From IMG/VR virus record IMGVR_UViG_3300013093_000017, positions 62,001 to 126,000 of that record: a stretch of DNA of 64,000 nucleotides. One strand, 5' to 3'. The position numbers and the translations under genes are program-made. Below are positions 5,066 through 24,229 of the stretch, one piece after another. The notes beneath the pieces are model-generated. The model ran no database searches. It was not told the origin of the DNA and saw only the letters and a list, made by a program, of their open reading frames with translations. Every line of letters starts with the position of its first letter. The first letter of the stretch is position 1.

Positions 5066-6381
5066 GCAAATTTACTCATAAATTGATCAACGATCGTTCC
5101 GATGTACGCAATCTGTTCTAGTGTTACAACAGGACTGGTACCAAGGAAGAATGTGTTTAACATCACATGTGTTGCTACTGGAAATTGATCACGAGCAGTC
5201 TGCGGATCCATTAGATGATCGTAAGCAGGTTGTAACATGATATTGCCAGCAAAGTAAGGGCGTGTTTGGATCTTAGCATCTTCTAAGAAGTCTACAATAT
5301 CAGCACGCTTAAATGGCGCATCTGGACGAATAGTTAATGCAAAGGCAAACCAGCTTGGATCACTATGCTCACGAGCACGTGGTAACATAAAGAATTTTTC
5401 ATATTTTTCAAATACACTAAACAACGCTGAATAGTTTTCTCTACGGCGTGCTTCGATCACTGGCAATTTATCTAATTGCTTAAGGCCCATGCTACCCTGT
5501 AGCTCAATTGGTTTGATGTTGTAACCAATTTCATCATATACATATTTGTGATCAAAGATTTCATCTTTCAACGCAGGAATCCAATTGCTAAAGCGTGTCT
5601 TACAACTACCGCATTTCAATTTGTTTGCTTCTGGTCCTACACAGTAACAGCCACGACCCCATTCACGGAAACTGCGCAGGATGTCTTCTGTTACCTTACC
5701 GTTACAGGCAACAAAGCCGCCTTCTCCCATGGTGATGTGATGTGCTGGGTAGAAACTGCAACTGGCCATTTCACCAAAACTACCTAATGGTTTGCCATCG
5801 TAGGTAGTGCCTAGTCCATCACAACAATCCTCTAATAAGATTAAATTGTATTTTTCAACAAGTGCCATCAGTTGTCGCATGTTTGGCGGATTGCCTAAGA
5901 CATGTGCAAATGTAATCACACGTATATCTGGATCTGCTGCTAGAATTGCCTCTGCTTGATCTAAATCTAAATTTAATGTGTCAAACTCAATATCCACAAA
6001 CACAGGAACAAAGCCCACTTGTAACATTGGATTAAGTGTTGTTGGAAATCCTGCAATAGGTGTTAGTACTTTAGTACCTACTGGTAGATTATGTCCACGT
6101 TTACTTTTCAGTGCTGACATCATCAATAGGTTAGCACTTGAACCACTGTTGGTTAACACGCCATTTGTCTTGTCAAAGTACTTGGGAAATTTATTCTCAA
6201 AACGTGAGCAATCATTGCCCATGACTAACCACCCTTTGAGTAGGGTTTCTACTGCGGCCACACTTTCTTCTGCGTCAAACAATGGACCTGCGTAATTAAC
6301 AAAGTCCTCACCAGCACGCCATGTTTTGGCTGCTTGTTTATCTTCTACGTATTTTCTAACTTGATCTAAAATTTCTTTCAT
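5062..6381 (-). CDS. rfbH: CDP-4-keto-6-deoxyglucose 3-dehydrase (RfbH/DdhC; DegT family)
   Basis: NSGSSANL, SFYPAHHITMGEGG with His in place of the PLP lysine, WGRGCYC, DHKY. Confidence 0.9.
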   Translation of the reverse strand: MKEILDQVRKYVEDKQAAKTWRAGEDFVNYAGPLFDAEESVAAVETLLKGWLVMGNDCSRFENKFPKYFDKTNGVLTNSGSSANLLMMSALKSKRGHNLPVGTKVLTPIAGFPTTLNPMLQVGFVPVFVDIEFDTLNLDLDQAEAILAADPDIRVITFAHVLGNPPNMRQLMALVEKYNLILLEDCCDGLGTTYDGKPLGSFGEMASCSFYPAHHITMGEGGFVACNGKVTEDILRSFREWGRGCYCVGPEANKLKCGSCKTRFSNWIPALKDEIFDHKYVYDEIGYNIKPIELQGSMGLKQLDKLPVIEARRRENYSALFSVFEKYEKFFMLPRAREHSDPSWFAFALTIRPDAPFKRADIVDFLEDAKIQTRPYFAGNIMLQPAYDHLMDPQTARDQFPVATHVMLNTFFLGTSPVVTLEQIAYIGTIVDQFMSKFA

Positions 6382-10038: not shown

Positions 10039-10116
10039 CGGAGTGTATGTCAGTCTGGCTAGACGGCCTGCTTTGGGAGCAGGAGGCCGTAGGTTCGAAT
10101 CCTACCATTCCGACCA
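10039..10116 (+). tRNA. tRNA-Pro(TGG)
   Basis: Cloverleaf, CCTGC-TT-TGG-GA-GCAGG, CCA. Confidence 0.93.
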
Positions 10117-10120
10117 ATAT

Positions 10121-10196
10121 GTCCCTATCATCTAGCGGCCTAGGATACTGCCCTTTCACGGCAGGTACACGAGTTCGAATCTCGTTAGGGACACCA
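10121..10196 (+). tRNA. tRNA-Glu(TTC)
   Basis: CTGCC-CT-TTC-AC-GGCAG, CCA. Confidence 0.93.
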
Positions 10197-10202
10197 AATA
10201 AT

Positions 10203-10289
10203 GAGTGTTCGGGGACGTGGGAGTGTCTCGGCTGGCTGTAACCCAGTTGCCTTATGGCTTAGTAGGTTCGAATCCTACAACATTCACCA
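10203..10289 (+). tRNA. tRNA-Tyr(GTA)
   Basis: GCTGG-CT-GTA-AC-CCAGT, long variable arm, CCA. Confidence 0.88.
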
Positions 10290-10295
10290 AGTTAT

Positions 10296-10390
10296 GTCGC
10301 AGTTCCAGTTACACTAATCTCTCAGTTCAAAGCTGTTAGTGTGTAAAGGACACGAGAAAGTCAACTTCTTCTGGGTAGACTGTGACGCCA
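10296..10390 (+). ncRNA. CCA-terminated non-cloverleaf structured RNA
   Basis: GTCGCAGT/ACTGTGAC stem followed by G-CCA; internal TTACACTAA/TTAGTGTGTAA helix. Confidence 0.4.
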
Positions 10391-10394
10391 TTTT

Positions 10395-10504
10395 TAGACT
10401 CGTGTAGGAACTTTGAGATCGTATAACCTCTTGAAACTGGATAAGTGAGAGCCAGGCCAGTCAAAAACACGTACGGTAAATGCTGTGCAACTCGGCAGAG
10501 TCTA
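10395..10504 (+). ncRNA. Structured RNA with T-arm-like 3' hairpin
   Basis: TAGACTC/GAGTCTA closing stem; GCTG-TGCAACT-CGGC hairpin just before the 3' strand. Confidence 0.35.
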
Positions 10505-10619
10505 TTTTATAGTAGTAAATTTTTAGGAGAAACCAAAGTGAAGAGTACTAAACTTTAGTGTCATCTTTAATCCCATGTATGATTAAGGATAGGCACGTTA
10601 AACATCTTTATACATATAT

Positions 10620-10694
10620 GGGGGTATAATTCAATGGCTAGAATATCCGGCTTTTACCCGGACTATCAGAGTTCAAATCTCTGTGCCCTCACCA
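10620..10694 (+). tRNA. tRNA-Lys(TTT)
   Basis: TCCGG-CT-TTT-AC-CCGGA, CCA. Confidence 0.92.
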
Positions 10695-10699
10695 ACATA

Positions 10700-11581
10700 T
10701 TAAATTACATTCAGTGAGTGCAATTTAGTATGTTGTAATAATTTTAACAGTTGTTTTATTTTACTACCTGCTTGGTATTCGTCGTATGATATTCTAAATA
10801 CAGTAATGCCTAAATGGGTTTGTATATATGCATCACGCAGTTCGTCTGCTTCTTTATGTTTAGGCTTTTCGTGTTGTTTACCGTCAAGTTCTACTATAAG
10901 ATTTACGGTAGGGAAATAATAATCAACAAAATACCATTTACCTGTTAGATGATTTTTAATAAAGTGTTCGTCAATGTACTTGGTGGATATTTTATTATCA
11001 ACTAACCATCGTTCAAATGATTGTTCTAAATAAGATTTTTTATCTCTTCTGTAATTGCTTCTGCGATTGGTTTTGATGCGTTTAATTATCTTATCGGAAA
11101 TTAAAGATGACTTACATTCATCTGAACAGGTTTTGCGGTGACTGTGTTTAATAACAGTACCACATTGATGACAAAAAGATACTTTTGAATATTGCGGCAA
11201 TGGGTTTTCGTTATTATATTTTTGGACGCCCTTTGAGATTTTTTGTTTTCGGTTGAGGTCTATAGCAATACCTTTTCTATCTTTATTGTAATACACAGCA
11301 GAGCAAGATGTAGAACAAAATTTGTTATGTCTTCTTTTGTATTCGAGTGCTAAATTACATTGAATACATTTAGACGGAGACTGGATATAATCTAATTTTA
11401 TAGATTTTAATTTTTTATTATTTGCCTTAACAGCAGATATTTGTCCAAGTTTGCCATTTTTAAGATTTCGTAGTTTGCCTTCTTTGGTATGAGAAATAAG
11501 ATAATGAGAATGTATTCCTTTAGAGGTTTTGGGTTCTCGACAAACTACGCAGGAGCAAGGATAAGATGTTTTATTAGTCAT
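10700..11581 (-). CDS. Free-standing homing endonuclease (Zn-finger N-terminus, DUF559/Vsr-like nuclease)
   Basis: Several CxxC pairs; YFVDYYFP..LIVELDGKQH..D..RD; antisense inside the tRNA array; TATAAATA upstream on the minus strand. Confidence 0.75.
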   Translation of the reverse strand: MTNKTSYPCSCVVCREPKTSKGIHSHYLISHTKEGKLRNLKNGKLGQISAVKANNKKLKSIKLDYIQSPSKCIQCNLALEYKRRHNKFCSTSCSAVYYNKDRKGIAIDLNRKQKISKGVQKYNNENPLPQYSKVSFCHQCGTVIKHSHRKTCSDECKSSLISDKIIKRIKTNRRSNYRRDKKSYLEQSFERWLVDNKISTKYIDEHFIKNHLTGKWYFVDYYFPTVNLIVELDGKQHEKPKHKEADELRDAYIQTHLGITVFRISYDEYQAGSKIKQLLKLLQHTKLHSLNVI

Positions 11582-11628
11582 ACAAGTATTTATACATCAA
11601 AACGAATTTCTCCTACCAAATTGAAATA

Positions 11629-11720
11629 CCATACAAAAACACATTCTTCAAAGAATACAGGGTTCAATTCCCGGCCGTTGATCACGGAACTGCCAAGGTG
11701 GTGAGTGTATTCCTATATGG
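11629..11720 (+). ncRNA. Structured RNA with internal T-arm-like hairpin
   Basis: CCATA..ACATTC / GAGTGT..TATGG closing stem; GGG-TTCAATT-CCC. Confidence 0.35.
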
Positions 11721-11726
11721 TTCAAT

Positions 11727-11801
11727 GTTGTCTATAGTGTAGTGGTAGCACCCAATCCTGTGAAGATTGTAGTATGAGATCGATACTCATTAGACAACCC
11801 A
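11727..11801 (+). tRNA. tRNA-His(GTG)
   Basis: G-1 8-bp acceptor, CAATC-CT-GTG-AA-GATTG, atypical T-loop ATCGATA, CCA. Confidence 0.88.
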
Positions 11802-11808
11802 AAGTTTT

Positions 11809-11883
11809 GCCTCGTTCATATAGTGGTTATTATGTCCGCCTGTCTAGTGGAACATAGGGGTTCGATTCCCCTACGAGGCGCCA
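11809..11883 (+). tRNA. tRNA-Asp(GTC)
   Basis: TCCGC-CT-GTC-TA-GTGGA, CCA. Confidence 0.9.
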
Positions 11884-11892
11884 AATTAAAGG

Positions 11893-11921
11893 TTGACGTG
11901 AAAAATCGTTGACTATATAAT
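11893..11921 (+). promoter_or_regulatory. Internal sigma70 promoter in tRNA array
   Basis: TTGACG-17-TATAAT. Confidence 0.75.
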
Positions 11922-11943
11922 AGTAACAGTTAGAAAGATCAAT

Positions 11944-12016
11944 TGCGGTAGAAGTGTAGTGGCGCATGATAGTCTCATAAGCTATCGGGGTGGTTCGATT
12001 CCAACGTCCGCATCCA
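11944..12016 (+). tRNA. tRNA-Met(CAT), imperfect stems
   Basis: ATAGT-CT-CAT-AA-GCTAT, TTCGA loop, CCA; mismatches in acceptor and T stems. Confidence 0.7.
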
Positions 12017-12032
12017 TAATTAGGAGAAGTAA

Positions 12033-12194
12033 ATGGCAGTTAAGAAAGCAAATCCAATGCAGACACGCACTGGTAAGACACGGTTAGGTCCATTGAATTT
12101 AACACAGTTACAAACTATGTTAGAAAAGACTTCTAAGAAAAAGATCAAGGCGCAGATTCAAAAGCGCATTGCAGAATTAGAAGCACGTAAGTAA
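12033..12194 (+). CDS. Small basic hypothetical protein (53 aa), not in ORF track
   Basis: SD AGGAGA; MAVKKANPMQTRTGKTRLGPLNLTQLQTMLEKTSKKKIKAQIQKRIAELEARK. Confidence 0.75.
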   Translation: MAVKKANPMQTRTGKTRLGPLNLTQLQTMLEKTSKKKIKAQIQKRIAELEARK

Positions 12195-12202
12195 AGTTTT
12201 AC

Positions 12203-12277
12203 GCCCAGTTAGCAGAGTGGTAATGCGCCTCACTTGTAATGAGGATATCGGGAGTTCGATTCTCTCACTGGGCACCA
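12203..12277 (+). tRNA. tRNA-Thr(TGT)
   Basis: CCTCA-CT-TGT-AA-TGAGG, CCA. Confidence 0.93.
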
Positions 12278-12284
12278 GTATTAA

Positions 12285-12369
12285 GCCCCTTTGGTGGAAT
12301 TGGTAGACACCGCGGTCTTAGAAGCCGCCGACGAAAGTCATGAGAGTTCGAGTCTCTTGGGGGGCACCA
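12285..12369 (+). tRNA. tRNA-Leu(TAG)
   Basis: GCGGT-CT-TAG-AA-GCCGC, long variable arm, CCA. Confidence 0.92.
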
Positions 12370-12379
12370 AAAGTTTTAT

Positions 12380-12453
12380 GCGGGATTAGTTTAATGGTAG
12401 AACTGCAGATTTCCAATCTCCTGGTGAGGGTTCGATTCCCTTATCCCGCTCCA
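12380..12453 (+). tRNA. tRNA-Gly(TCC)
   Basis: GCAGA-TT-TCC-AA-TCTCC, CCA. Confidence 0.9.
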
Positions 12454-12458
12454 GAACA

Positions 12459-12669
12459 CAAGGTTTACACTTTTACCTTATAGAAAGTGGGTCATTGCTA
12501 ATACCAGAACGGCAGGGTGCGCACGATGGTCTAGACCATACCACAAGTCCCACTATCCGGGAGCCTTGAAAGTATCGTGGGAGTTTTATTGTTTCTTACC
12601 ATATGGAAACAGTTGGACAGGGTAACTACTCAGTTTTGGGCTCGGTTGTGCGAGTAGCAAAACACTGAT
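12459..12669 (+). ncRNA. Candidate structured ncRNA(s) between tRNA-Gly and tRNA-Ala
   Basis: CAAGGTT/AGCCTTG multibranch with CACTTTT/AGAAAGTG, TGGTCTAGACCA and TCCC/GGGA hairpins; no credible ORF. Confidence 0.35.
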
Positions 12670-12671
12670 TC

Positions 12672-12746
12672 GGGCTGTTAGTATACTGGGTATTATTCCT
12701 GCCTTGCACGTAGGAGAAGACGGATCGTAACCGTCACGGTCCACCA
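12672..12746 (+). tRNA. tRNA-Ala(TGC)
   Basis: G3:U70 pair, CCTGC-CT-TGC-AC-GTAGG, T-loop ATCGTAA, CCA. Confidence 0.9.
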
Positions 12747-12752
12747 TATTAT

Positions 12753-12829
12753 AGAGGATTAGCTCAGTTGGTACGAGCAACTGCCTTACAAGCAGAAGGT
12801 CACTGGTTCGACCCCAGTATCCTCTACCA
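12753..12829 (+). tRNA. tRNA-Val(TAC)
   Basis: CTGC-CT-TAC-AA-GCAG, CCA. Confidence 0.93.
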
Positions 12830-12836
12830 GTTCTAT

Positions 12837-12915
12837 TCCGCAGAATCCGAGCTAGGCGCACGGACTTGACTGTTAATCAATGATTAGCTGGGTTCGAATC
12901 CCAGATGCGGAGCCA
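12837..12915 (+). tRNA. tRNA-Asn(GTT)
   Basis: TTGA-CT-GTT-AA-TCAA, CCA. Confidence 0.88.
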
Positions 12916-12919
12916 TATT

Positions 12920-13020
12920 TGCAGAGCGTGGGCTAGTCTAGCGTCGACGTACACTCCGAGTTAGTTGCAACTAACAACAGATTGTGAAAACTAGACAACG
13001 AGGTTCGATTCCTTACTGCA
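12920..13020 (+). ncRNA. tRNA-like RNA, same acceptor/T-arm module as 9906-9986
   Basis: TGCAG...GAGG-TTCGATT-CCTT-ACTGCA; internal GTCTAG/CTAGAC and GTTAGTTGCAACTAAC helices. Confidence 0.5.
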
Positions 13021-13029
13021 TCTTAAATT

Positions 13030-13490
13030 TATCGTCGATAGCCGGAGCAAATCCTTTGAGCGGCTTGAGCATAAGCAAGGCACCGAGACGCAGGTGTATA
13101 TTTCCGGTGAAAGTCCGGACGGTAATAGATTTTATCTCCCTCCGTAAAGGATGGAACAGTGAGCTCTCAGTTCCCTGCAAGGTAGTAGTAGACAAGAAGC
13201 AAACAGGCGTACTAGTCATACGCAATGTGCTGATTAGGTCGCTATGCAACCTCTGACAATAGGTCATGACTGGCCAACGATAGGAGACACTTGTAAAGCT
13301 CTCACAGTTTAACCGGTGGTGAAAATCCACAGGGGAGGCCAGTTTTGGGATAGACGGCAAGATCTTAAACGAGTCCTAAGTAGCGTCAGTAGTACGAAAC
13401 ACATTTTGCGCGAAATATAGATGAGCTCTCTTGTTCGAGACAATCCAGCAAGGCCTTTGGAGAAAAGGATAGCTGGGCGCCCAAAAACCC
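13030..13490 (+). ncRNA. Candidate large structured ncRNA (~460 nt; GOLLD/ROOL-type context)
   Basis: GC-richer non-coding block with T-loop hairpins CCGG-TGAAAGT-CCGG and GTGG-TGAAAAT-CCAC and long-range helices CTGGCC/GGCCAG and TTTTGGG/CCCAAAA. Confidence 0.55.
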
Positions 13491-13496
13491 TTTTAT

Positions 13497-13571
13497 GCTT
13501 CGGTAGCTCAGTGGTAGAGCAATCGGTTGATAACCGATAGGCCGGTGGATCGTTCCCACCTCGAAGCACCA
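13497..13571 (+). tRNA. tRNA-Ile(GAT)
   Basis: ATCGG-TT-GAT-AA-CCGAT, T-loop ATCGTTC, CCA. Confidence 0.9.
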
Positions 13572-13579
13572 TTTATATG

Positions 13580-13608
13580 TTGACAGACGGATAAACATCT
13601 GTTATACT
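13580..13608 (+). promoter_or_regulatory. Internal sigma70 promoter
   Basis: TTGACA-17-TATACT. Confidence 0.75.
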
Positions 13609-13775
13609 ATGTTTTAAGATTTGGAAGAAAGCCGGTACATTATGTATTCGAGGTTAGGAGAGACCGGCAAACCGTCCGATTAGAGTAGGTAATACTGCGG
13701 TTCGACTCCGCCGATTGAATTACTGTATGATTCTGCACATACCTAACAGGCCTGTATTGGCCGCAGATCGTTTAT

Positions 13776-13864
13776 GGAAGGTTATGCAATCTGGGATATT
13801 GCCGCGCACTTGAAATGCGCTGGAGCCTACGGGCCAGGAGTTCGATTCTGCCATCCTTCCGCCA
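13776..13864 (+). tRNA. tRNA-Ser(TGA)
   Basis: GCGCA-CT-TGA-AA-TGCGC, long variable arm, G73-CCA. Confidence 0.85.
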
Positions 13865-13876
13865 GTTTGAAAATAC

Positions 13877-13967
13877 GGAGAGTGGGCCGGACGGTAAGGC
13901 ACCACCCTGCTAAGGTGTACACTTGTGATGAACAGGTGACAGGGTTCGACTCCCTGACTCTCCGCCA
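13877..13967 (+). tRNA. tRNA-Ser(GCT)
   Basis: CACC-CT-GCT-AA-GGTG, long variable arm, CCA. Confidence 0.92.
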
Positions 13968-13972
13968 AATAC

Positions 13973-14008
13973 CCGGTGTTAGTTAAATGGATATAACAGG
14001 GGATTTCG
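13973..14008 (+). pseudogene. 5' half of a tRNA-Arg-like gene, truncated in the anticodon loop
   Basis: CCGGTGT-TA-GTTA-AATGGATA-TAAC-A-GGGGA-TTTC, then an abrupt switch to TATAAATA. Confidence 0.65.
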
Positions 14009-14022
14009 TATAAATAAACAAT

Positions 14023-14099
14023 GCGGTTGTAGCTCAGTGGATTAGAGCAACGAGCTTCTACCTCGTTGGCCGGGGGTTCGAGTCCCTCCAGCCGCACCA
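14023..14099 (+). tRNA. tRNA-Arg(TCT)
   Basis: ACGAG-CT-TCT-AC-CTCGT, CCA. Confidence 0.93.
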
Positions 14100-14114
14100 T
14101 TTAATAGAATACTT

Positions 14115-14798
14115 ATGTATCAAAAATTAACTAACTGTAAATATTGCAATGTTTCATTACTTGAAATGACTACTTCTCGGCGAGCAAATCACTCTCGATG
14201 GTGCAAACTAAATCCTAAGCATACTGAATATATAAATGCATTAGAAATTTCTAGAGAGAATATAGTTAATCGACGTAATCAATTTATGAAGGCTAAAGAG
14301 GATGGAAGGCCGATTCCGCCAGGAACACAGACCGGAAAACCAGGTACAATGTTAGGTAAGAAGCATTCTTCTAAAACTAAACAGCGTCAAAAAGAAAAGG
14401 CACTAGCAAGTCCTCATAGAAGATTAGTTAGATCTATTCGGAAATATACAAAAAAGGACGGAACTATAGTTAGTTTAGATTCGTTCTGGGAAGAAGCATT
14501 AGCTATTCGGCTTGATACTATAGGTGTTAACTGGATAAGACCGTCGCCTATTAAATGGATAGACAATGATAACGTAACTCATAATTACTTTCCAGATTTC
14601 TATCTACCAGAGTTTGATTTATATTTAGATCCAAAAAACCCGTATGCTGTCAAAGCTCAACAAGTTAAGATACAGTGTTTAAAACAGCAAATACAAAACC
14701 TTATAATTATAACAAGTTTAGAGGATTGCAACAATTATATTCCTCAACCAGTATTGCCCTATAGTTCAATGGAAGAACGGCTCCCTTATAAGGAGTGA
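14115..14798 (+). CDS. Free-standing homing endonuclease (NUMOD3-like repeat, PD-(D/E)XK nuclease)
   Basis: GKKHSSKTKQRQKE, SFWEE, YFPDFYLPEFDLYLDPK; its 3' end overlaps tRNA-Ile(TAT). Confidence 0.75.
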   Translation: MYQKLTNCKYCNVSLLEMTTSRRANHSRWCKLNPKHTEYINALEISRENIVNRRNQFMKAKEDGRPIPPGTQTGKPGTMLGKKHSSKTKQRQKEKALASPHRRLVRSIRKYTKKDGTIVSLDSFWEEALAIRLDTIGVNWIRPSPIKWIDNDNVTHNYFPDFYLPEFDLYLDPKNPYAVKAQQVKIQCLKQQIQNLIIITSLEDCNNYIPQPVLPYSSMEERLPYKE

Positions 14799-14846
14799 GT
14801 GCTAGATAAGCCGCTAATGTAGGTTCGAGTCCTACTAGGGGTACCA
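14755..14846 (+). tRNA. tRNA-Ile(TAT) with long variable arm
   Basis: GCTCC-CT-TAT-AA-GGAGT, ~20 nt variable arm, CCA; top of acceptor stem imperfect. Confidence 0.75.
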
Positions 14847-14848
14847 AT

Positions 14849-14923
14849 GCTGATGTAGCGTAGAGGTAGCGCAACGCCTTGGTAAGGCGTAGGTCGTGGG
14901 TTCAACTCCCATCATCAGCACCA
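14849..14923 (+). tRNA. tRNA-Thr(GGT)
   Basis: ACGCC-TT-GGT-AA-GGCGT, CCA. Confidence 0.92.
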
Positions 14924-14942
14924 GCAATACAGTAAGATCAAT

Positions 14943-14972
14943 TGGCTCATGGTGTAGTGGTAGCACAACTCA
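14943..14972 (+). pseudogene. 5' fragment of a tRNA-Gln-like gene
   Basis: TGGCTCA-TG-GTGT-AGTGGTA-GCAC-A-ACTCA; ends before the anticodon loop. Confidence 0.6.
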
Positions 14973-15012
14973 AAAAAATCCTTTATGTTGCTAAATACAG
15001 TAAGGAGATAAT

Positions 15013-15573
15013 ATGTTAGTTACTATTATAGAATACATGAACCAGACGAGAGAAGAAAGACGCTCTCGATTAAAGTTAGATGAACCATGCGATGAGCGCG
15101 GATTAGTGTACAGTTATCATTTAACTGGGCTATTAGCGTACTTAACAAACACAAGTATACCTAAAAAAGGTGATAACGCTATTGTGTGTCATGGATGTAA
15201 CAACGCAAAATGTTCAAACCCAAATCATTTATATTGGGGATCTTATAAGGATAATCATACGGATCAGGTTGAAAATGGAACATGGGATAGTCCGTATGCT
15301 AGGGCTAAGAAAAAATACAGTACTGTTGAGATGAATGAGATATACTCAAACAATGCCAAAGGTAATAAAGGTAATAAACAACCTAGATCCGAAGAGCATA
15401 AAAGAAAAATATCTGAGTCAATGAAAAAAGTTCAGCAAGAACTAAATCCTAATTTAGGAAAAGTAAGAAACAAAGTAGAATGCCCTCATTGTGGAAAGCA
15501 AGGTGCTATGAATACAATGAGCCGATGGCATTTTGATAATTGTCTTAATAGGCGTGTGGTGAAGATGGCTTAA
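15013..15573 (+). CDS. Free-standing HNH homing endonuclease with NUMOD3-like repeat and Zn ribbon
   Basis: VCHGCNNAKCSNPNHLYWGSYKDN, RSEEHKRKISESMK, CPHCGK; its 3' end overlaps tRNA-Gln. Confidence 0.8.
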   Translation: MLVTIIEYMNQTREERRSRLKLDEPCDERGLVYSYHLTGLLAYLTNTSIPKKGDNAIVCHGCNNAKCSNPNHLYWGSYKDNHTDQVENGTWDSPYARAKKKYSTVEMNEIYSNNAKGNKGNKQPRSEEHKRKISESMKKVQQELNPNLGKVRNKVECPHCGKQGAMNTMSRWHFDNCLNRRVVKMA

Positions 15574-15627
15574 CACACTGGATTTTGATTCCAGCATTCC
15601 TAGGTTCGAATCCTAGCACGCCTGCCA
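15550..15627 (+). tRNA. tRNA-Gln(TTG)
   Basis: CTGGA-TT-TTG-AT-TCCAG, CCA. Confidence 0.92.
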
Positions 15628-15747
15628 GAACAGTCCGGGAACAGCTCTCCTTTCGTAAGAAAGTGTAACTGACTATAGCTGGGATTTACCAGTGAACTTA
15701 CAGGACGCTGTAAGGTACGGGCATACAGGAGGATAACTCCAATCTAT

Positions 15748-15821
15748 TCCGGTGTAGTATAATGGCAGTGCGACGGTCTCCAAAACCGTTAGTGGGGGTT
15801 CGATTCCCTCCACCGGAGCCA
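15748..15821 (+). tRNA. tRNA-Trp(CCA)
   Basis: ACGGT-CT-CCA-AA-ACCGT, CCA. Confidence 0.93.
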
Positions 15822-15830
15822 AACAATGTG

Positions 15831-15859
15831 TTGACTTTTAGTTAAGTTGATAGTATAAT
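15831..15859 (+). promoter_or_regulatory. sigma70 promoter
   Basis: TTGACT-17-TATAAT. Confidence 0.75.
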
Positions 15860-15886
15860 GTGCTTTTATTTGAAATGGAGCATGAA

Positions 15887-16351
15887 ATGTCAAAAGTTAT
15901 TAAATCAGAGTATGTTGAAGCAGCCATGGAACAATTAGATAGTGCGGCTAAATTACTCAAAACAGCCTACACCAATCCAAACAAAAATCTTGTGTTAATA
16001 TTAGACATGATTGATGATATTTGGGGGCAATTAGAATTGCTAGCTGATACACAGTACGACAAAGAAAATCCAGGTAAAGAAATGACGCAGGCTCAATATG
16101 ACACTGAGCACAGTGAGCGGGTGGCTAGGATTAAAGCCCTACAAGAAGTTACCATTACCAAAGTAGACAAGGCCACATTCAAAGCCATTAGTGATGATTT
16201 ATACACAGCAATTGGCAATGTCAGTGGCAAATACAATCTGTCTATTGCCTTTCCGTTATCCAGTTTCTCATTCCGTGCCTATGATTCGGAGAATCCCGAG
16301 CAGTATTGGCCACTAGGTAGAGAGTTTGATACAGAAATAAATCCATTATAG
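15887..16351 (+). CDS. Hypothetical protein
   Basis: ORF 15860-16351; likely start ATG 15887 after SD GGAG. Confidence 0.7.
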   Translation: MSKVIKSEYVEAAMEQLDSAAKLLKTAYTNPNKNLVLILDMIDDIWGQLELLADTQYDKENPGKEMTQAQYDTEHSERVARIKALQEVTITKVDKATFKAISDDLYTAIGNVSGKYNLSIAFPLSSFSFRAYDSENPEQYWPLGREFDTEINPL

Positions 16352-16352
16352 G

Positions 16353-16381
16353 TTGACAGGTACCATATGCTCCTGTATTAT
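16353..16381 (+). promoter_or_regulatory. sigma70 promoter
   Basis: TTGACA-17-TATTAT. Confidence 0.65.
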
Positions 16382-16409
16382 TAATGAATAGTCAAAAGGA
16401 CAAAAGAAT

Positions 16410-16979
16410 ATGAACGTTACATTACGTAAAGCAAGTGCGTTACAGAACGCAATCAACGACACAATCAAAGGCATTCAGCTTAAAGTAGCTGTAAACCTAA
16501 GTGAGTTCCAAGATGCAGAAACAGTAATTTCTAAATCTCGCCAAGCATTGTTAAACAATGTTGATCGCAAGGTAGCACTAACCAAGGCATTGTATGCAAT
16601 TCGCGCCTCAGTAGGTGCAGCAAACAACGCCTCAGTAGATGCACTGTTGGCACAGGTAGCACAGGTTGAAAAAACAATCCAAATCTACACAAACTTAGCT
16701 GAAACAGAAGTGCGTGAAGATGCCACAGTTATTGCAGGTAAGTTGGATAAGATTAAGAACCGCACAGCAGATGCTCGTCCAAGTTACTACGGACACAGTG
16801 ACGAAGTAAACACCAGTGTATTAACACAAGATGATATTGAATCTTTCCGAGGTTTCATTGCACTGGCAAAGAAAAACAAACAGACTTTGCAGGATCAAAT
16901 CCTTGAAGCAAACGTTCGCACTGAAATCACTTTAGATGCAGACACAGTAGCAACACTAACAGCAGAAAAATTGCTGTAA
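16410..16979 (+). CDS. Helical protein, possibly DIP1984-like family
   Basis: Coiled-coil pattern; C-terminal LQDQILEANVRTEITL resembles the DIP1984-type ending (family call tentative). Confidence 0.6.
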   Translation: MNVTLRKASALQNAINDTIKGIQLKVAVNLSEFQDAETVISKSRQALLNNVDRKVALTKALYAIRASVGAANNASVDALLAQVAQVEKTIQIYTNLAETEVREDATVIAGKLDKIKNRTADARPSYYGHSDEVNTSVLTQDDIESFRGFIALAKKNKQTLQDQILEANVRTEITLDADTVATLTAEKLL

Positions 16980-17021
16980 TAGTTTTTGGTGGTTTGGCTC
17001 TAGGGCTAAAATCACCCAGAT

Positions 17022-17249
17022 GTGAGAAAGAGACGAGGATTGGCAAGGACATCATACATCGTATGATTCCATACTTAATGAGCAATCGCCTTGAAAAGCG
17101 ATCGTGTTTGCGTGTTCCGGTTATTATATAAATTTGTTTATTGCCACCGTTGAAATATGCAAGCCCCTGTGTTTTGAACATTGTCTTTTGTCAGCGGATA
17201 TTATAATAATATCTTTTGTCATTTGCTGTGCCATTTACTTACTTTCTCA
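17022..17249 (+). ncRNA. Candidate ncRNA downstream of 16410-16979
   Basis: TGAGAAAG/CTTTCTCA long-range closure; repeated (A/T)TTG motifs separated by short hairpins. Confidence 0.4.
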
Positions 17250-17261
17250 ATCTGTTTCTTC

Positions 17262-17339
17262 GCACACGTGGCTGAGTGGCCCAAAGCAGCGGCCTGCAAA
17301 GCCGTAAAACCGCCGGTTCAAATCCGGCCGTGTGCTCCA
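17262..17339 (+). tRNA. tRNA-Cys(GCA)
   Basis: GCGGC-CT-GCA-AA-GCCGT, U73-CCA. Confidence 0.92.
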
Positions 17340-17340
17340 T

Positions 17341-17416
17341 AGTAATGTAGCATAGTGGCTAATGCGGCACCTTCATACGGTGTATATCGTGAGTTCGAGT
17401 CTCACCATTACTACCA
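17341..17416 (+). tRNA. tRNA-Met/Ile2(CAT)
   Basis: GCACC-TT-CAT-AC-GGTGT, CCA. Confidence 0.88.
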
Positions 17417-17423
17417 GCTTTAC

Positions 17424-17532
17424 ATTAACAACCTTAACGCAACTCGGTACACGGATACCTGATCAGTGGGAGTGTTTGACATAGTCGGACCGCTGCAACA
17501 CTGTGGGTGGCAAAGCCGTGCTCGTTGTTAAT
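17424..17532 (+). ncRNA. Candidate small structured RNA
   Basis: ATTAACAAC/GTTGTTAAT closing stem with nested CACGG/CCGTG and CAGTG/CACTG helices. Confidence 0.4.
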
Positions 17533-17534
17533 TT

Positions 17535-17610
17535 GCCCTGTTAGTTCAACGGATTAGAATTAGAGTCTTCGAAACTCAGGATGGGGGTTCGATTCCCTCA
17601 CGGGGCACCA
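17535..17610 (+). tRNA. tRNA-Arg(TCG)
   Basis: GAGT-CT-TCG-AA-ACTC, CCA. Confidence 0.9.
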
Positions 17611-17660
17611 AACAAGTAATCGCATAATGTAGCGGAATACACTACGTTATGTAAATCAAT

Positions 17661-17736
17661 GCGGCTGTAGCTCAGTTGGTAGAGCGTCTGCTTGCCAAGC
17701 AGAAGGTCACGAGTTCGAGACTCGTTAGCCGCTCCA
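17661..17736 (+). tRNA. tRNA-Gly(GCC)
   Basis: TCTGC-TT-GCC-AA-GCAGA, CCA. Confidence 0.94.
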
Positions 17737-17746
17737 TTTATTTTGA

Positions 17747-17775
17747 TTGACAGTTGGTAATACCTATGCTATAAT
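17747..17775 (+). promoter_or_regulatory. sigma70 promoter
   Basis: TTGACA-17-TATAAT. Confidence 0.8.
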
Positions 17776-17799
17776 ATGCTTGTACAGTTAGGAAATGAT

Positions 17800-18105
17800 A
17801 TGAAACACTACGTATATGAACCAGGTATAAAGAAAATTGAAAAAGTATTACCGTATTCTGTGGCTGTTCCGCAGGGTTATAAAACTCACGCACAGGCCCT
17901 ATGCCAACGAATATTAGGCAAAAGATATTGTCGTTGGGATCCAAGATGGCGCAGAGTTAATAATTGGACAGTGAAAACCACTACCAGGTGGACAGTATAT
18001 GAAGATGCAGTTTGGCACTACAAAGATGGTATACTTTACTTCAAAGATGAAGCTAATACTAAAATGCTTACAATGGTATTATTAAGTAAAACCAAAAGGA
18101 GATAG
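17800..18105 (+). CDS. Hypothetical protein
   Basis: ORF 17776-18105; likely start 17800 after AGGA. Confidence 0.65.
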   Translation: MKHYVYEPGIKKIEKVLPYSVAVPQGYKTHAQALCQRILGKRYCRWDPRWRRVNNWTVKTTTRWTVYEDAVWHYKDGILYFKDEANTKMLTMVLLSKTKRR

Positions 18106-18109
18106 TACT

Positions 18110-18592
18110 ATGAAACCATGGATTGAAAACATCAGCTTAGAAGATGTAAAGAAAGGCTATCACCACGATGCTGGCGATAATTCTATGCTAATTCAAATCG
18201 TAGATCCTGGTGTAGAGTTTCCAACTCCTAAGTACAAGTTTAAGCGAGTATCACAGTACTTCTTCCTTGATGTAGAGGATAGAGATATTCCCGGTGCTAT
18301 ATTTGATGCGGCAATCACTGACGCAGACGCTATCGGTATTGCCGAAGATTTGAAATACGCATTGGCCAATAACATGAACGTAATTGTTCACTGTCATATG
18401 GGTGTGTGCCGTAGTGGTGCTGTAGCAGAAGTAGGTGTTATGTTAGGTTTCCAAGATACTGAAAAGTATCGTATTCCTAACACAATGGTCAAGCGTAAAC
18501 TTATGGAATACTTTGGTATGACATACACAGAGTCCGAGCTCCCTAAAGGGGCTTGGGCACTTGACGAAAATGGAATTAGACATTATTATTAA
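18110..18592 (+). CDS. Protein-tyrosine/dual-specificity phosphatase-like protein
   Basis: VHCHMGVCRS (CX5R) motif. Confidence 0.8.
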   Translation: MKPWIENISLEDVKKGYHHDAGDNSMLIQIVDPGVEFPTPKYKFKRVSQYFFLDVEDRDIPGAIFDAAITDADAIGIAEDLKYALANNMNVIVHCHMGVCRSGAVAEVGVMLGFQDTEKYRIPNTMVKRKLMEYFGMTYTESELPKGAWALDENGIRHYY

Positions 18593-18598
18593 GAATAT

Positions 18599-18674
18599 GC
18601 TACCTTAGCTCATCTGGTAGAGCACCGGCCTGAAGAGTCGGGTGTGCTTGGTTCAAGTCCAAGAGGTAGCACCA
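18599..18674 (+). tRNA. tRNA-Phe(GAA)
   Basis: CCGGC-CT-GAA-GA-GTCGG, CCA. Confidence 0.92.
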
Positions 18675-21752: not shown

Positions 21753-23045
21753 ATGGATTATAAAGTAGCGGACATTGGCCTAGCCGCTTGGGGCCACAAA
21801 GAAATTGCAATCGCAGAAACGGAAATGCCGGGATTAATGGCAATTCGTAACGAATTAAAACCAAATCAACCACTTAAAGGTGCTCGCATTGTGGGGTCAT
21901 TACACATGACTATTCAAACTGCTGTGCTGGTACAGACTTTAGTTGCTCTAGGCGCAGAAGTGCGTTGGAGTAGCTGTAATATTTTTTCAACACAAGACCA
22001 CGCCGCAGCAGCCTTGGCAGAACAAGGTATTCCTGTATATGCTTGGAAAGGTGAAACTGAAGCTGACTACTGGTGGTGCATTGAACAGACTATTAAAAAT
22101 CCAAACGATCCAACCTGGAAACCCAATATGTTGTTAGATGATGGACATGATCTAACTTGGTATATCCACACTAACTATCCAGAACTATTAGATGGTATCT
22201 ATGGTGTTACTGAAGAAACAACTACAGGTATTCACAAGATTAACGAAGCTATTGCTAATGGTAGTTTCCGTCTACGTGCTATTAATGTTAACGATAGTGT
22301 AACTAAAAGTAAGTTTGATAACTTATATGGTTGCCGTGAAAGTCTAGTAGATTCGATCAAACGTGCTACCGATGTTATGATTGCTGGTAAGACCGCAGTA
22401 GTAGCAGGCTACGGTGATGTGGGTAAAGGTTCGGCCGCTAGTCTTAAGGCACTTGGTGCGCAGGTTTGGGTAACTGAAATTGACCCAATCTGTGCCCTAC
22501 AAGCCGCAATGGAAGGCTACAAGGTAGTTACCATGGACTATGCCGCAGACAAAGCAGACATCTTTGTAACAGCCACAGGCAATGTAGACATCATCACACA
22601 TGCGCACATGTTAAAGATGAAACACAATGCTATTGTATGTAACATTGGGCACTTCGACAGCGAAATTCAAATTGCTAGTTTGGCTGGCTACGAGTGGGAC
22701 GAGATTAAACCGCAAGTAGATCACGTGACTATGCCTAGTGGTAATAAGATAATTATCTTAGCCAAAGGTCGATTGGTAAATTTAGGTTGTGGTACAGGAC
22801 ATCCTAGCTTTGTTATGTCAAACAGCTTTACTAATCAAGTAATTGCACAGGTTGAAATGTTCCAAAACTATGCTAACTATGAGATTGGTAAGATGTATTT
22901 GTTACCTAAACACCTAGATGAAAAGGTAGCTAGTCTACACCTAGCACAGATTGGCGCAGAGCTAACCGACCTAACACCTGCGCAAGCAGACTACATTGGC
23001 GTAAAGGTACAAGGTCCATACAAACCAGAAACATATAGGTACTAA
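21753..23045 (+). CDS. ahcY: Adenosylhomocysteinase (SAH hydrolase)
   Basis: [54 protein letters not shown]. Confidence 0.97.
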
Positions 23046-23046
23046 A

Positions 23047-23403
23047 ATGAAAAGACTAGAAGGGTTTGTTGAAAAAGGTTGGGGATCAGAGTTAATATGG
23101 GCTACTAACCATAAGTATTGTGGTAAACTGTTAAAGTTTAATAAAGATGCCAAATTCAGTATGCACTTTCATGCTGAAAAAGATGAATCTTGGTATGTAT
23201 TAGATGGTCAATTTATTATTAAATGGATTGATACCAGCGATGCTTCATTACATGAGCAATATCTTAATCCAGGGGATACATACCGTAACTTTCCGTTATT
23301 TCCTCATCAATTGATCTGCATCGAAGAAGGTACAATTATTGAGGTTTCTACTCCGGACAGTGTAGAGGATAACTATCGAGTAATGCCCGGAGATAGTCAG
23401 TAA
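23047..23403 (+). CDS. Cupin-domain protein (sugar isomerase-like)
   Basis: KGWGSE, SMHFHAEKDESW, PH, EVST. Confidence 0.8.
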   Translation: MKRLEGFVEKGWGSELIWATNHKYCGKLLKFNKDAKFSMHFHAEKDESWYVLDGQFIIKWIDTSDASLHEQYLNPGDTYRNFPLFPHQLICIEEGTIIEVSTPDSVEDNYRVMPGDSQ

Positions 23404-23404
23404 T

Positions 23405-23499
23405 GCGGTCGTAAGCAAAAGGCAAAGCTCTAGGACCTAGGTCCTAGGATAGGGAGAACCTAGTTCCCCTTGTTGGTTCGACTCCAGCCGACCGTACCA
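23405..23499 (+). tRNA. Orphan tRNA-Leu-like gene with palindromic, non-canonical anticodon arm
   Basis: GCGGTCG/CGACCGT acceptor, A73-CCA, D arm, long variable arm, GTTGG-TTCGACT-CCAGC T arm; anticodon arm CTAGGA-CCTAGG-TCCTAG. Confidence 0.7.
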
Positions 23500-23512
23500 T
23501 AAATACACTACA

Positions 23513-24229
23513 ATGAACAAATTCAATTGTAGTCCAAAATTGGGTAGAGAATTCTCAATTCCATCGAGAAACGATTTATTGCCCATCATACACGAAATAT
23601 CTCCCGAGATAGTTAACACCGTTATTGGCACTTATGAGCTAATATTGAAACTAGGTACCCATCTTGGCAAGAGATTTCGTGTTCATATACTACATGTTGA
23701 AAACCCTCACGTGCTACCAAACGAGCTAGATGCTAATGGAGTATATGATTCCGAAGATGATGAGCGAGGAAAGATATCAATTAGCCTATATCTTATCAAT
23801 AATCCAGCAGACCGCACGTTGTTATGGGATCAAGAAACATTTGATCGTGTGGCAAAACGCATAGCTGATTGTTTAATACACGAACTAACCCATCTACATC
23901 AATCAAGAGCTCGACATTTCTTAAATGTTTCAACACATCATACTGGAAGAGAAACAGAAGAAGAAGAAGCACAAACATATCTTAGTGAGTTTGACGAGAT
24001 AGATGCATACGCACGCAACATTGCAGGCGAGCTATCAGACCTAGATGACACTGTTGACCTACACAAATGTCTCGAACATCCGAGTGGTATAAGCCTTAAT
24101 GTAAGTCCTAATCTCTGGGGTTACATAACTGCCTTCAAAAAAGACCTAAATCATCCTGTAATTAAACGATTATTGAAAAAAATCTATAAAAATTATCAAC
24201 TTTTGACAAAAAAAGACTTGCGTTCTTAA
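23513..24229 (+). CDS. Putative zincin-like metallopeptidase
   Basis: IHELTH (HExxH) plus downstream Y..DEIDAYA. Confidence 0.6.
   Translation: MNKFNCSPKLGREFSIPSRNDLLPIIHEISPEIVNTVIGTYELILKLGTHLGKRFRVHILHVENPHVLPNELDANGVYDSEDDERGKISISLYLINNPADRTLLWDQETFDRVAKRIADCLIHELTHLHQSRARHFLNVSTHHTGRETEEEEAQTYLSEFDEIDAYARNIAGELSDLDDTVDLHKCLEHPSGISLNVSPNLWGYITAFKKDLNHPVIKRLLKKIYKNYQLLTKKDLRS

Follow-up and report, generated by a model that had tools for sequence, protein, structure and literature searches.

Freshwater jumbo phages carry a small family of tRNA-like RNAs in which the body of a class II tRNA is conserved and the anticodon is gone. The comparisons presented here establish the existence of this family, its covarying structure, the loss of the anticodon and a strong constraint on the tRNA body. 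At the level of primary and predicted secondary structure, they demonstrate that the acceptor helix, A73, the CCA end, the D arm and T loop (the predicted elbow) and the long variable arm have been kept, and that the anticodon has given way to a predicted closed hairpin of free sequence and length. Our preferred reading, to which we assign a probability of roughly 60%, is that these are functional, non-decoding tRNA-like RNAs, leucine-accepting mimics that would act through their acceptor end.

A tRNA-like RNA with a hairpin at the anticodon position

The window, by which we mean the whole 64,000-nt stretch of DNA analysed here, covers bases 62001-126000 of the 229,675-bp IMG/VR record IMGVR_UViG_3300013093_000017, the genome of an AT-rich jumbo phage originating from lake-water metagenomes. 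ARAGORN calls an array of 24 canonical tRNAs on the plus strand of the window (10039-18674), every one with an encoded CCA; the tRNA-like RNA lies 4.7 kb past the last of them, in line with the distance of about 5 kb given in an earlier note on this DNA. Immediately upstream is a cupin gene (23047-23403, plus strand; PHROG annotation "cysteine dioxygenase") whose stop codon ends 1 nt before the RNA, and immediately downstream is gene P0001 (23513-24229, plus strand), which encodes a 238-aa HExxH protein of unassigned fold and starts 14 nt past the RNA, leaving 13 nt between the RNA and this next start codon. Since no convincing promoter is seen between the cupin gene and the RNA, we infer that the two are co-transcribed. 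The cupin-adjacent position is not a general one: in a scan of the best 80 cupin-bearing loci, the RNA was directly downstream only in a sister assembly of the same locus. Elsewhere in the genome, outside the window, there is a permuted tmRNA of the Betaproteobacteria type, which suggests that the phage has a proteobacterial, and by tmRNA type betaproteobacterial, host.

The RNA itself is 95 nt long (23405-23499, plus strand, as are all of its parts) and can be drawn as a class II cloverleaf with A73 and an encoded CCA. The 5' acceptor strand (23405-23411) pairs with 23489-23495 through G1.U72 and six Watson-Crick pairs, and is followed by U8, A9 and the D arm (23412-23429), which has a 3-bp AGC/GCU stem and a 10-nt loop with A14, A15 and G18G19. 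An 18-nt perfect palindrome (23430-23447) occupies the anticodon position; it makes a stem of 7-8 bp capped by a CUAG tetraloop, and a 7-nt loop is absent. A 4-nt linker (23448-23451; GAUA here, GAAU in most members of the family) leads to the variable arm (23452-23469), a hairpin of 3+4 bp in which one A is bulged and the triloop is CUA. This hairpin includes a second CTAG, as the earlier note had remarked. Two unpaired U residues (23470-23471) separate it from the T arm (23472-23488), which has 5 bp, one of them U.G, and the loop UUCGACU; the 3' acceptor strand, A73 (23496) and CCA (23497-23499) complete the molecule (23489-23499). The long variable arm and the A73-CCA end described in the earlier note can be read directly from the sequence. 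Its description of the acceptor and T arms as perfect holds in that both arms are present, but each stem contains one wobble pair.

The minimum free energy fold of 23405-23499 is this cloverleaf (-37.1 kcal/mol), again with the 7-8 bp stem and CUAG tetraloop at the anticodon position. ARAGORN, one of the checks proposed in the earlier note, labels the same interval tRNA-??? with a 2-nt "anticodon", implying a 6-nt loop; thus a program that fits a 6-nt loop and a fold that closes to a tetraloop both bear out the earlier statement that there is no 7-nt loop with U33. The RNA has a canonical 7-bp acceptor, a D arm with G18G19, a T arm with a UUCRA loop and a 3' NCCA, whereas an anticodon arm of 5 bp, with U33 and a 3-nt anticodon in a 7-nt loop, is lacking. 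In an Rfam scan by E-value (limit 1), in which overlapping matches from one clan were collapsed to the best one, the sole tRNA-clan match at the locus was tRNA-Sec, whose score of 24.2 bits falls short of its threshold of 47. We rejected this assignment: in addition to the score below threshold, the geometry is 7+5 and not 8+5, the D stem has 3 bp and not 6, and there is no UCA. The window copy also scores below the gathering threshold of the general tRNA family (RF00005, 29 bits), and among six relatives scanned only two, L112 (32.9 bits) and L096 (30.9 bits), are barely above it.

An RNA that neither ARAGORN nor Rfam accepts as a tRNA could be an assembly artefact or a recently decayed tRNA-Leu pseudogene. 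The first of these is excluded, because 321 bases spanning the locus are identical in a second, 259-kb IMG assembly from a sister sample, and because Logan contigs from two further freshwater runs of other studies (spanning 23359-23708 and 23333-23610) cross the whole RNA without a difference or a gap. The sequence, identical in these four data sets, is real. The public runs that hold the locus are all DNA, and no RNA run with the locus was present among those searched.

The RNA belongs to a covarying family

A covariance model built from the window RNA (R1; 123.8 bits for the window copy) was run on whole records of related phages. In the first homologue, a 102-nt RNA in a 327-kb phage (72.8 bits), substitutions in the acceptor, T and variable stems compensate one another. 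Scans of viral and metagenome collections with a D-arm/T-loop signature, together with a second model (R2; 79 bits for the window copy), enlarged the family to 15 members with 13 different anticodon-position arms, all of them from related jumbo phages of fresh water. No member came from outside freshwater viral and metagenome contigs: the D-arm/T-loop pattern had no match in 185,579 prokaryote genomes (one per species), and a nucleotide search of 50,697 GenBank phage records gave nothing useful. The earlier note had suggested that reads or relatives might reveal a normal 7-nt TAG loop; neither does.

Covariation across the family is extensive. In one alignment (A5), 99% of the cells at paired positions are standard pairs and 15 of the 27 pairs change on both sides; none of 500 shuffled alignments reached the observed percentage paired, either of two counts of pairs with changes on both sides, or the covariation score, and three of 500 reached the measure of further pair types. 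A larger alignment (A6) has 96.8% of cells paired and changes on both sides in 13 of 23 pairs, with none of 500 shuffles reaching the same four measures and 23 of 500 reaching that for further pair types. Both alignments were fitted to the model and are hence biased toward the structure. Nonetheless, we regard the predicted structure as secure, because controls in which the pairing was slid along A5 fail (about 28-44% paired) and because compensatory changes are visible in the raw sequences. Among the individual helices, the acceptor has changes on both sides in four of its seven pairs with 100% of cells paired, the T arm likewise has 100% of cells paired with two covarying pairs, and five of the six modelled pairs of the variable arm covary, with a tip motif, RAY-NUA-RUY, that recurs among members. 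The D stem (AGC/GCU) and A73 are invariant in 15 of 15 members, and the 3' end is CCA in 12 and CCG in three. Conservation in relatives, which the earlier note had left to be checked, is thus that of a structured family. ARAGORN makes no call for 13 of the 15 members and forces one into tRNA-Pro(ggg); with standard tRNA finders, such genes are passed over or given a wrong label.

Most relatives carry the RNA 6-25 nt directly upstream of tRNA-Thr(UGU) and/or tRNA-Arg(UCG or CCG), and in these phages it therefore belongs to tRNA operons. The window copy, standing apart from the tRNA array, differs from them in this respect. In another member, L022, the RNA has a promoter (TTGACT-17-TATAAA) on its 5' side and a dCMP-deaminase gene on its 3' side.

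These arrangements bear on the suggestion that the RNA is a processing or stability module, its tRNA shape serving only to recruit RNase P and 3' processing enzymes. Such a module would cut polycistronic transcripts or protect the end of a neighbouring tRNA or mRNA, as a natural "tRNA scaffold" or as punctuation. The tight spacing and the lack of a promoter of its own in the window, the position between promoter and gene in L022, and the place at the head of a tRNA mini-operon in other phages would all suit this role. RNase P, however, needs only an acceptor/T minihelix, and this need does not account for A73 and the D arm being invariant, for the conservation of the linker or for covariation in the long variable arm. 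We consider it quite unlikely that processing is the whole function.

Constraint is inverted relative to a normal tRNA

In the 11 phages with an adjacent tRNA-Arg, the mean pairwise identity is 89.5% for the 5' acceptor strand and D arm and 89.4% for the T arm and 3' acceptor strand, as compared with 68% for the neighbouring working tRNA-Arg. The linker and variable arm have 58% identity, and the anticodon-position arm has 27% (48% under optimal pairwise alignment, which is roughly noise). Measured in this way, the constraint is inverted relative to a normal tRNA, with a tight body and a free anticodon-position arm, and the body appears to be under purifying selection stronger than that on the neighbouring working tRNA. 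Across the family the arm ranges from 18 to 27 nt; in most cases it closes into a hairpin whose loop has 3-8 nt, and a conserved anticodon is absent. Predicted apical loops include CUAG, UCCG, UGCG, UACA, CUUG, UUUG, GUA, UUU and one 8-nt loop, and no loop sequence is common to the members. When compared with shuffles, most arms come out as the better hairpins; the mean z-score is -2.0, the window arm being the most extreme (-4.9). Four or five arms, among them those of L112, L116, L105 and L106, fold no better than shuffles, and the anticodon-position arm may therefore be simply unconstrained. The arm of L112 has a weak stem topped by an AUUAAAA loop, which may be a relic. Judged from these alignments and folds, anticodon function is lost in every member, while a helical stub of free sequence is usually kept. 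With 15 of 15 members lacking a conserved anticodon loop and the remaining tRNA parts conserved and covarying, the earlier description of the RNA as non-decoding fits the whole family.

The same data dispose of a recently decayed pseudogene. The poor folding of some arms is of the sort that decay would leave, but the covariation and the strongly conserved body exclude a recent pseudogene: decay would not produce a family with compensatory changes whose body is better conserved than a working tRNA. Together with the identity of the locus across data sets, this leaves an artefact or pseudogene scarcely credible.

Decoding and the palindrome

The earlier note had proposed a quadruplet-decoding (CUAG) or amber suppressor tRNA. 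A decoding tRNA of such an unusual type, acting as a +1 frameshift suppressor in the quadruplet case, has some appeal in that an 8-nt loop, ACCUAGGU, can be drawn for the window copy and CUAG includes the leucine codon CUA. Such a role would require a conserved loop, which is absent here: CUAG, CUA and UAG are missing from the apical loops of all 14 homologues, U33 is lacking, and the fold favoured on thermodynamic grounds leaves a loop of 4 nt. The genome provides no occasion for either activity. TAG is an ordinary stop codon, closing 35 of 239 long ORFs, and just one TAG separates two long ORFs in the same frame; recoding of TAG is not seen, and there is no 7-nt loop with a CUA anticodon to perform it. 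Long ORF pairs joined by an in-frame CUAG, the candidates for +1 frameshifting, number zero. We give both forms of decoding next to no chance.

The palindrome could have a role of its own in this phage, as an operator, cruciform or endonuclease site, or by forming a kissing dimer through CUAG loops. No other perfect palindrome in the 230-kb genome is as long (18 nt); it holds CCTAGG and CTAG, and ACCUAG is common to this arm and the variable arm, making alternative or intermolecular pairing possible. Nonetheless, shuffled genomes are expected to contain 1.36 palindromes of at least 18 nt. CTAG and CCTAGG are neither avoided nor enriched, and the observed/expected ratio for CTAG of 0.95 led us to reject an explanation from restriction or CTAG avoidance. 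The sequence occurs once in the genome, with no repeat copies of the palindrome or its halves, and is not conserved in relatives. The last point speaks against the DNA operator or att site suggested in the earlier note, and the suggested kissing dimer fares no better, as the loops of most members are not self-complementary. In prokaryote genomes the 18-mer gave scattered single matches at chance level and no arrays. We also rejected mimicry of a CRISPR repeat (an RNA anti-CRISPR), which was tested for the window's arm only: the 18-mer was found once per locus in 14 unrelated genomes, again at chance level. The palindrome alone is statistically unremarkable, and its significance comes from its position in the RNA; we think it very improbable that a role of the palindrome itself accounts for this gene.

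A plausible leucine identity

The E. coli leucyl-tRNA synthetase (LeuRS) needs A73, A15-U48, G18G19, A20a and the tertiary pairs linking the D loop with the T loop, according to the account of leucine identity in PMC9976931; in the same account, charging persists in a truncated tRNA-Leu without anticodon and variable arms, the antideterminant by which Ser is told apart from Leu and Tyr is G73, and U35 is a requirement of TyrRS. The window copy has the E. coli LeuRS set: A73, A14, A15/U48, G18G19, A20a and a canonical T loop, with the tertiary pairs G18:U55, G19:C56 and U54:A58 predicted from the sequence. Its D loop continues after GG with N-A-N-A, like the D loops of tRNA-Leu, and the best matches of both covariance models outside the family are phage tRNA-Leu(UAA/CAA). 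A leucine-type identity, and chargeability with leucine, are plausible because this identity set is present and because the nearest canonical tRNAs are tRNA-Leu(UAA/CAA).

Three observations weigh on the other side. The D loop is one nucleotide shorter 5' of G18G19 than in E. coli or phage tRNA-Leu, which could affect recognition by LeuRS. D-arm similarity among phage tRNAs did not single out Leu as the isotype. The great length of the variable arm would fit SerRS as well, although A73 in turn argues against this enzyme. As to the gene complement of these phages, tRNA-Leu(UAA) is missing from five arrays that bear the RNA and present in a 340-kb relative without it; a simple replacement of tRNA-Leu(UAA) by the RNA was nonetheless rejected, since one genome (G003) has both.

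What the RNA might do

We propose that the RNA descends from a class II tRNA, most probably of a phage tRNA-Leu lineage. After transcription together with tRNAs or with an mRNA, it would be excised as tRNAs are, through RNase P and 3' processing. Host enzymes whose recognition is confined to the upper body would then recognise it, chiefly LeuRS, to which the anticodon arm is irrelevant. Once leucylated, it could act away from the decoding centre through its leucyl/CCA end and its elbow, whether as a dedicated acceptor or donor or as a competitor for tRNA-binding factors. We propose action through the acceptor end because conservation falls on the parts by which enzymes acting on the upper body of tRNA recognise it.

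A more specific version of this proposal, which we put forward tentatively, is that the RNA is an anticodon-less aminoacyl carrier, charged by the host LeuRS, kept from decoding and used by freshwater jumbo phages outside the ribosome. Such a carrier might supply leucyl groups to a transferase or withhold them from it; it might titrate LeuRS, EF-Tu or a tRNA-targeting defence enzyme; or it might serve in signalling. The hypervariable closed arm would then be what the RNA pays for evading host nucleases directed at the anticodon, or the device by which it evades them.

Alternatively, the RNA may be an anti-defence or competitor decoy, an uncharged or irrelevantly charged mimic that soaks up a host enzyme attacking or modifying tRNA. 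Candidate targets would include nucleotidyltransferase or pyrophosphokinase toxins that act on the CCA end and nucleases that cut the acceptor or T loop; without an anticodon loop, the RNA would itself be immune to anticodon nucleases. That the body is more conserved than an ordinary tRNA while the arm is hypervariable would fit a decoy, as would the location in phage tRNA operons. Phage tRNAs are, moreover, known to counter tRNA-targeting defences, a concept cited in PMC13573597. We looked for phage enzymes that might use an aminoacyl-tRNA or otherwise partner the RNA in five large genomes (G000, G003, G008, G031 and G010), and found none of the families tested, namely class Ia and class IIa aminoacyl-tRNA synthetases, L/F-transferase, FemAB, the CCA-adding enzyme and reverse transcriptase; this negative result weighs against our preferred reading, and the missing user of an aminoacyl-tRNA also counts toward a decoy. 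On the other hand, neither a cognate defence system nor a binding partner was identified, a stoichiometric sponge would neutralise catalytic toxins poorly, and the D arm mimics no bacterial tRNA, given that its pattern with the T loop was matched in none of the 185,579 prokaryote genomes. We consider a decoy unlikely.

The gene next to the RNA offers no firmer lead to a partner of the leucine-accepting RNA that we favour. All eight RNA-bearing records compared have a homologue of P0001, at a distance of 0.01-4.3 kb on the downstream side of the RNA; nine other records have none. An unrelated control neighbour, P0002, has nearly the same clade-wide distribution, so we attribute the co-occurrence of P0001 to clade synteny and do not claim a functional link with the RNA. 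A predicted model of P0001 (pLDDT 72.7) had no convincing match in the PDB.

Relation to known RNAs

The closest canonical counterparts are phage and bacterial tRNA-Leu, with which the phage RNA shares the 7-bp acceptor, A73-CCA, the 3-bp D stem, the D loop pattern RAAN-GG-NANA, a long variable arm with two unpaired nucleotides after it, and the canonical T loop. It differs from them in having no 5-bp stem, 7-nt loop or anticodon, in its D loop, shorter by 1 nt, and in its variable arm, which is much longer (7-9 bp). Closer in spirit are the minimalist tRNA-Leu substrates of LeuRS, which are still leucylated after removal of the anticodon arm (Larkin et al. 2002, as summarised in PMC9976931). 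As described in that summary, these substrates retain A73 and the tertiary core of D and T loops, the exact set kept in the phage RNA; they are engineered, whereas the phage RNA is natural and conserved, and has a helical stub and a long variable arm.

The tRNA-like domain of tmRNA and the 3' tRNA-like structures of viruses are acceptor/T-arm mimics that are processed and aminoacylated without an anticodon reading codons. tmRNA depends on G3.U70 for its alanine identity, on SmpB and on an mRNA module, and has no D stem; plant viruses carry their tRNA-like structures at the 3' end of the genome. In the phage RNA, the pair at this position is G3-C70 or A3-U70 and the D stem is invariant, and these phages encode a separate tmRNA of the beta type. 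The tRNA cluster of phage T4 includes small stable non-tRNA RNAs of unassigned function that are co-transcribed and co-processed with the phage tRNAs, and by this general description alone they resemble the RNA described here.

A pseudo-tRNA of Bacillus cereus, tRNA-Other, has no role in translation and is possibly a structural element of a longer RNA (PMC3399842). It is likewise a tRNA-like gene without a decoding role that has been recruited elsewhere; it is chromosomal, flanks a genomic island and is known from a single locus (PMC3399842), while the phage RNA forms a covarying family inside tRNA operons, with a closed arm at the anticodon position. A full-text search of the literature found no description of such a phage RNA family, which is absence of evidence only. 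The phage RNAs are thus a small family, not previously filed, of the tRNA-like or pseudo-tRNA type.

Implications

The tRNA genes of phages are usually explained by codon supply or by replacement of host tRNAs cut by defence systems. Selection on a tRNA shape that is blind to codons suggests instead that the tRNA body itself is put to use, through charging, the CCA end or recognition of the elbow. There is also a practical consequence for annotation, in that ARAGORN missed most members, and such genes are skipped or mislabelled. Should the RNA prove to be charged, the minimalist LeuRS substrates would have a counterpart in nature, and the RNA would be a new example either of aminoacyl-tRNAs employed outside translation or of tRNA mimicry in the conflict between phage and host.

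Genes flanking the tRNA-like RNA

Immediately 5' of the tRNA-like RNA, window positions 21753-23403 (+) hold auxiliary metabolic genes. These comprise a full-length S-adenosyl-L-homocysteine hydrolase gene (430 aa; Pfam E-value 1.9e-127) and a gene for a cupin of 118 aa, which carries the PHROGs label cysteine dioxygenase and is present on more than 460 viral contigs. On the 3' side, an 8-bp inverted repeat, ACTACAAT ... ATTGTAGT, lies within window 23500-23545 and flanks the ATG of the downstream gene; before the transcript is processed, this repeat could mask the start codon. That gene (window 23513-24229, +) encodes P0001, an HExxH protein whose family evolves fast, with 25-45% identity between members as against about 80% for the neighbouring genes. 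The family has the invariant motifs ADxxxHExxH..Q.R.R and DExDAY, and in one relative its gene is tandemly duplicated (L022:4738-5469 and 5454-6164). P0001 matched no Pfam family, and there was no convincing fold match in the PDB.

Other tRNA genes in the phage and its relatives

The phage and its relatives share a conserved family of "tRNA-Ile" genes of 90-99 nt, with members at window 14755-14846 (+) and, in relatives' loci, at L043:1253-1342, L088:1501-1592 (-), L091:1501-1595, L100:535-626, L190:101-199 and L192:101-197. The anticodon is UAU, or GAU in one member, and the D stem is a normal 4 bp. Since the variable arm is long, the family is class-II-like in predicted structure. Many members have an AGAUAAG-like motif in this arm, which recalls the tip sequence GACAUAGUC seen in the tRNA-like family.

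ARAGORN also called several 77-nt tRNA-Leu(UAG/GAG) genes in relatives (L016:4796-4872, L067:6042-6118, L106:5509-5585, L100:174-250, and at about position 101624 of the large relative G010). These may be class-I-like leucine tRNAs, because their length is too small for the usual long variable arm; the Leu(UAG) gene of the window itself is a normal 85 nt.

A further relative with the tRNA-like RNA, G008, has a 75-nt, canonical-looking tRNA with an amber-reading CUA anticodon in a 7-nt loop (G008:C1:329801-329875). By crude ORF statistics, TAG closes 32 of the 371 long ORFs in this genome, a proportion similar to that in a relative lacking the CUA tRNA, and these ORFs gave no sign of genome-wide TAG recoding. 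In the genome of our phage, just one TAG, outside the window at G000:C1:12076, has a long ORF on either side of it in a shared frame (231 aa and 561 aa); these ORFs are most likely simply two neighbouring genes.

tmRNA and a possible host

The phage also encodes a permuted (two-piece) tmRNA of Betaproteobacteria type, with the tag ASNDSIFALAA, at G000:C1:24515-24845, outside the window (see also L123:495-821). Similar tmRNA genes adjoin the cupin gene in relatives. The tmRNA type hints that the host is a betaproteobacterium.
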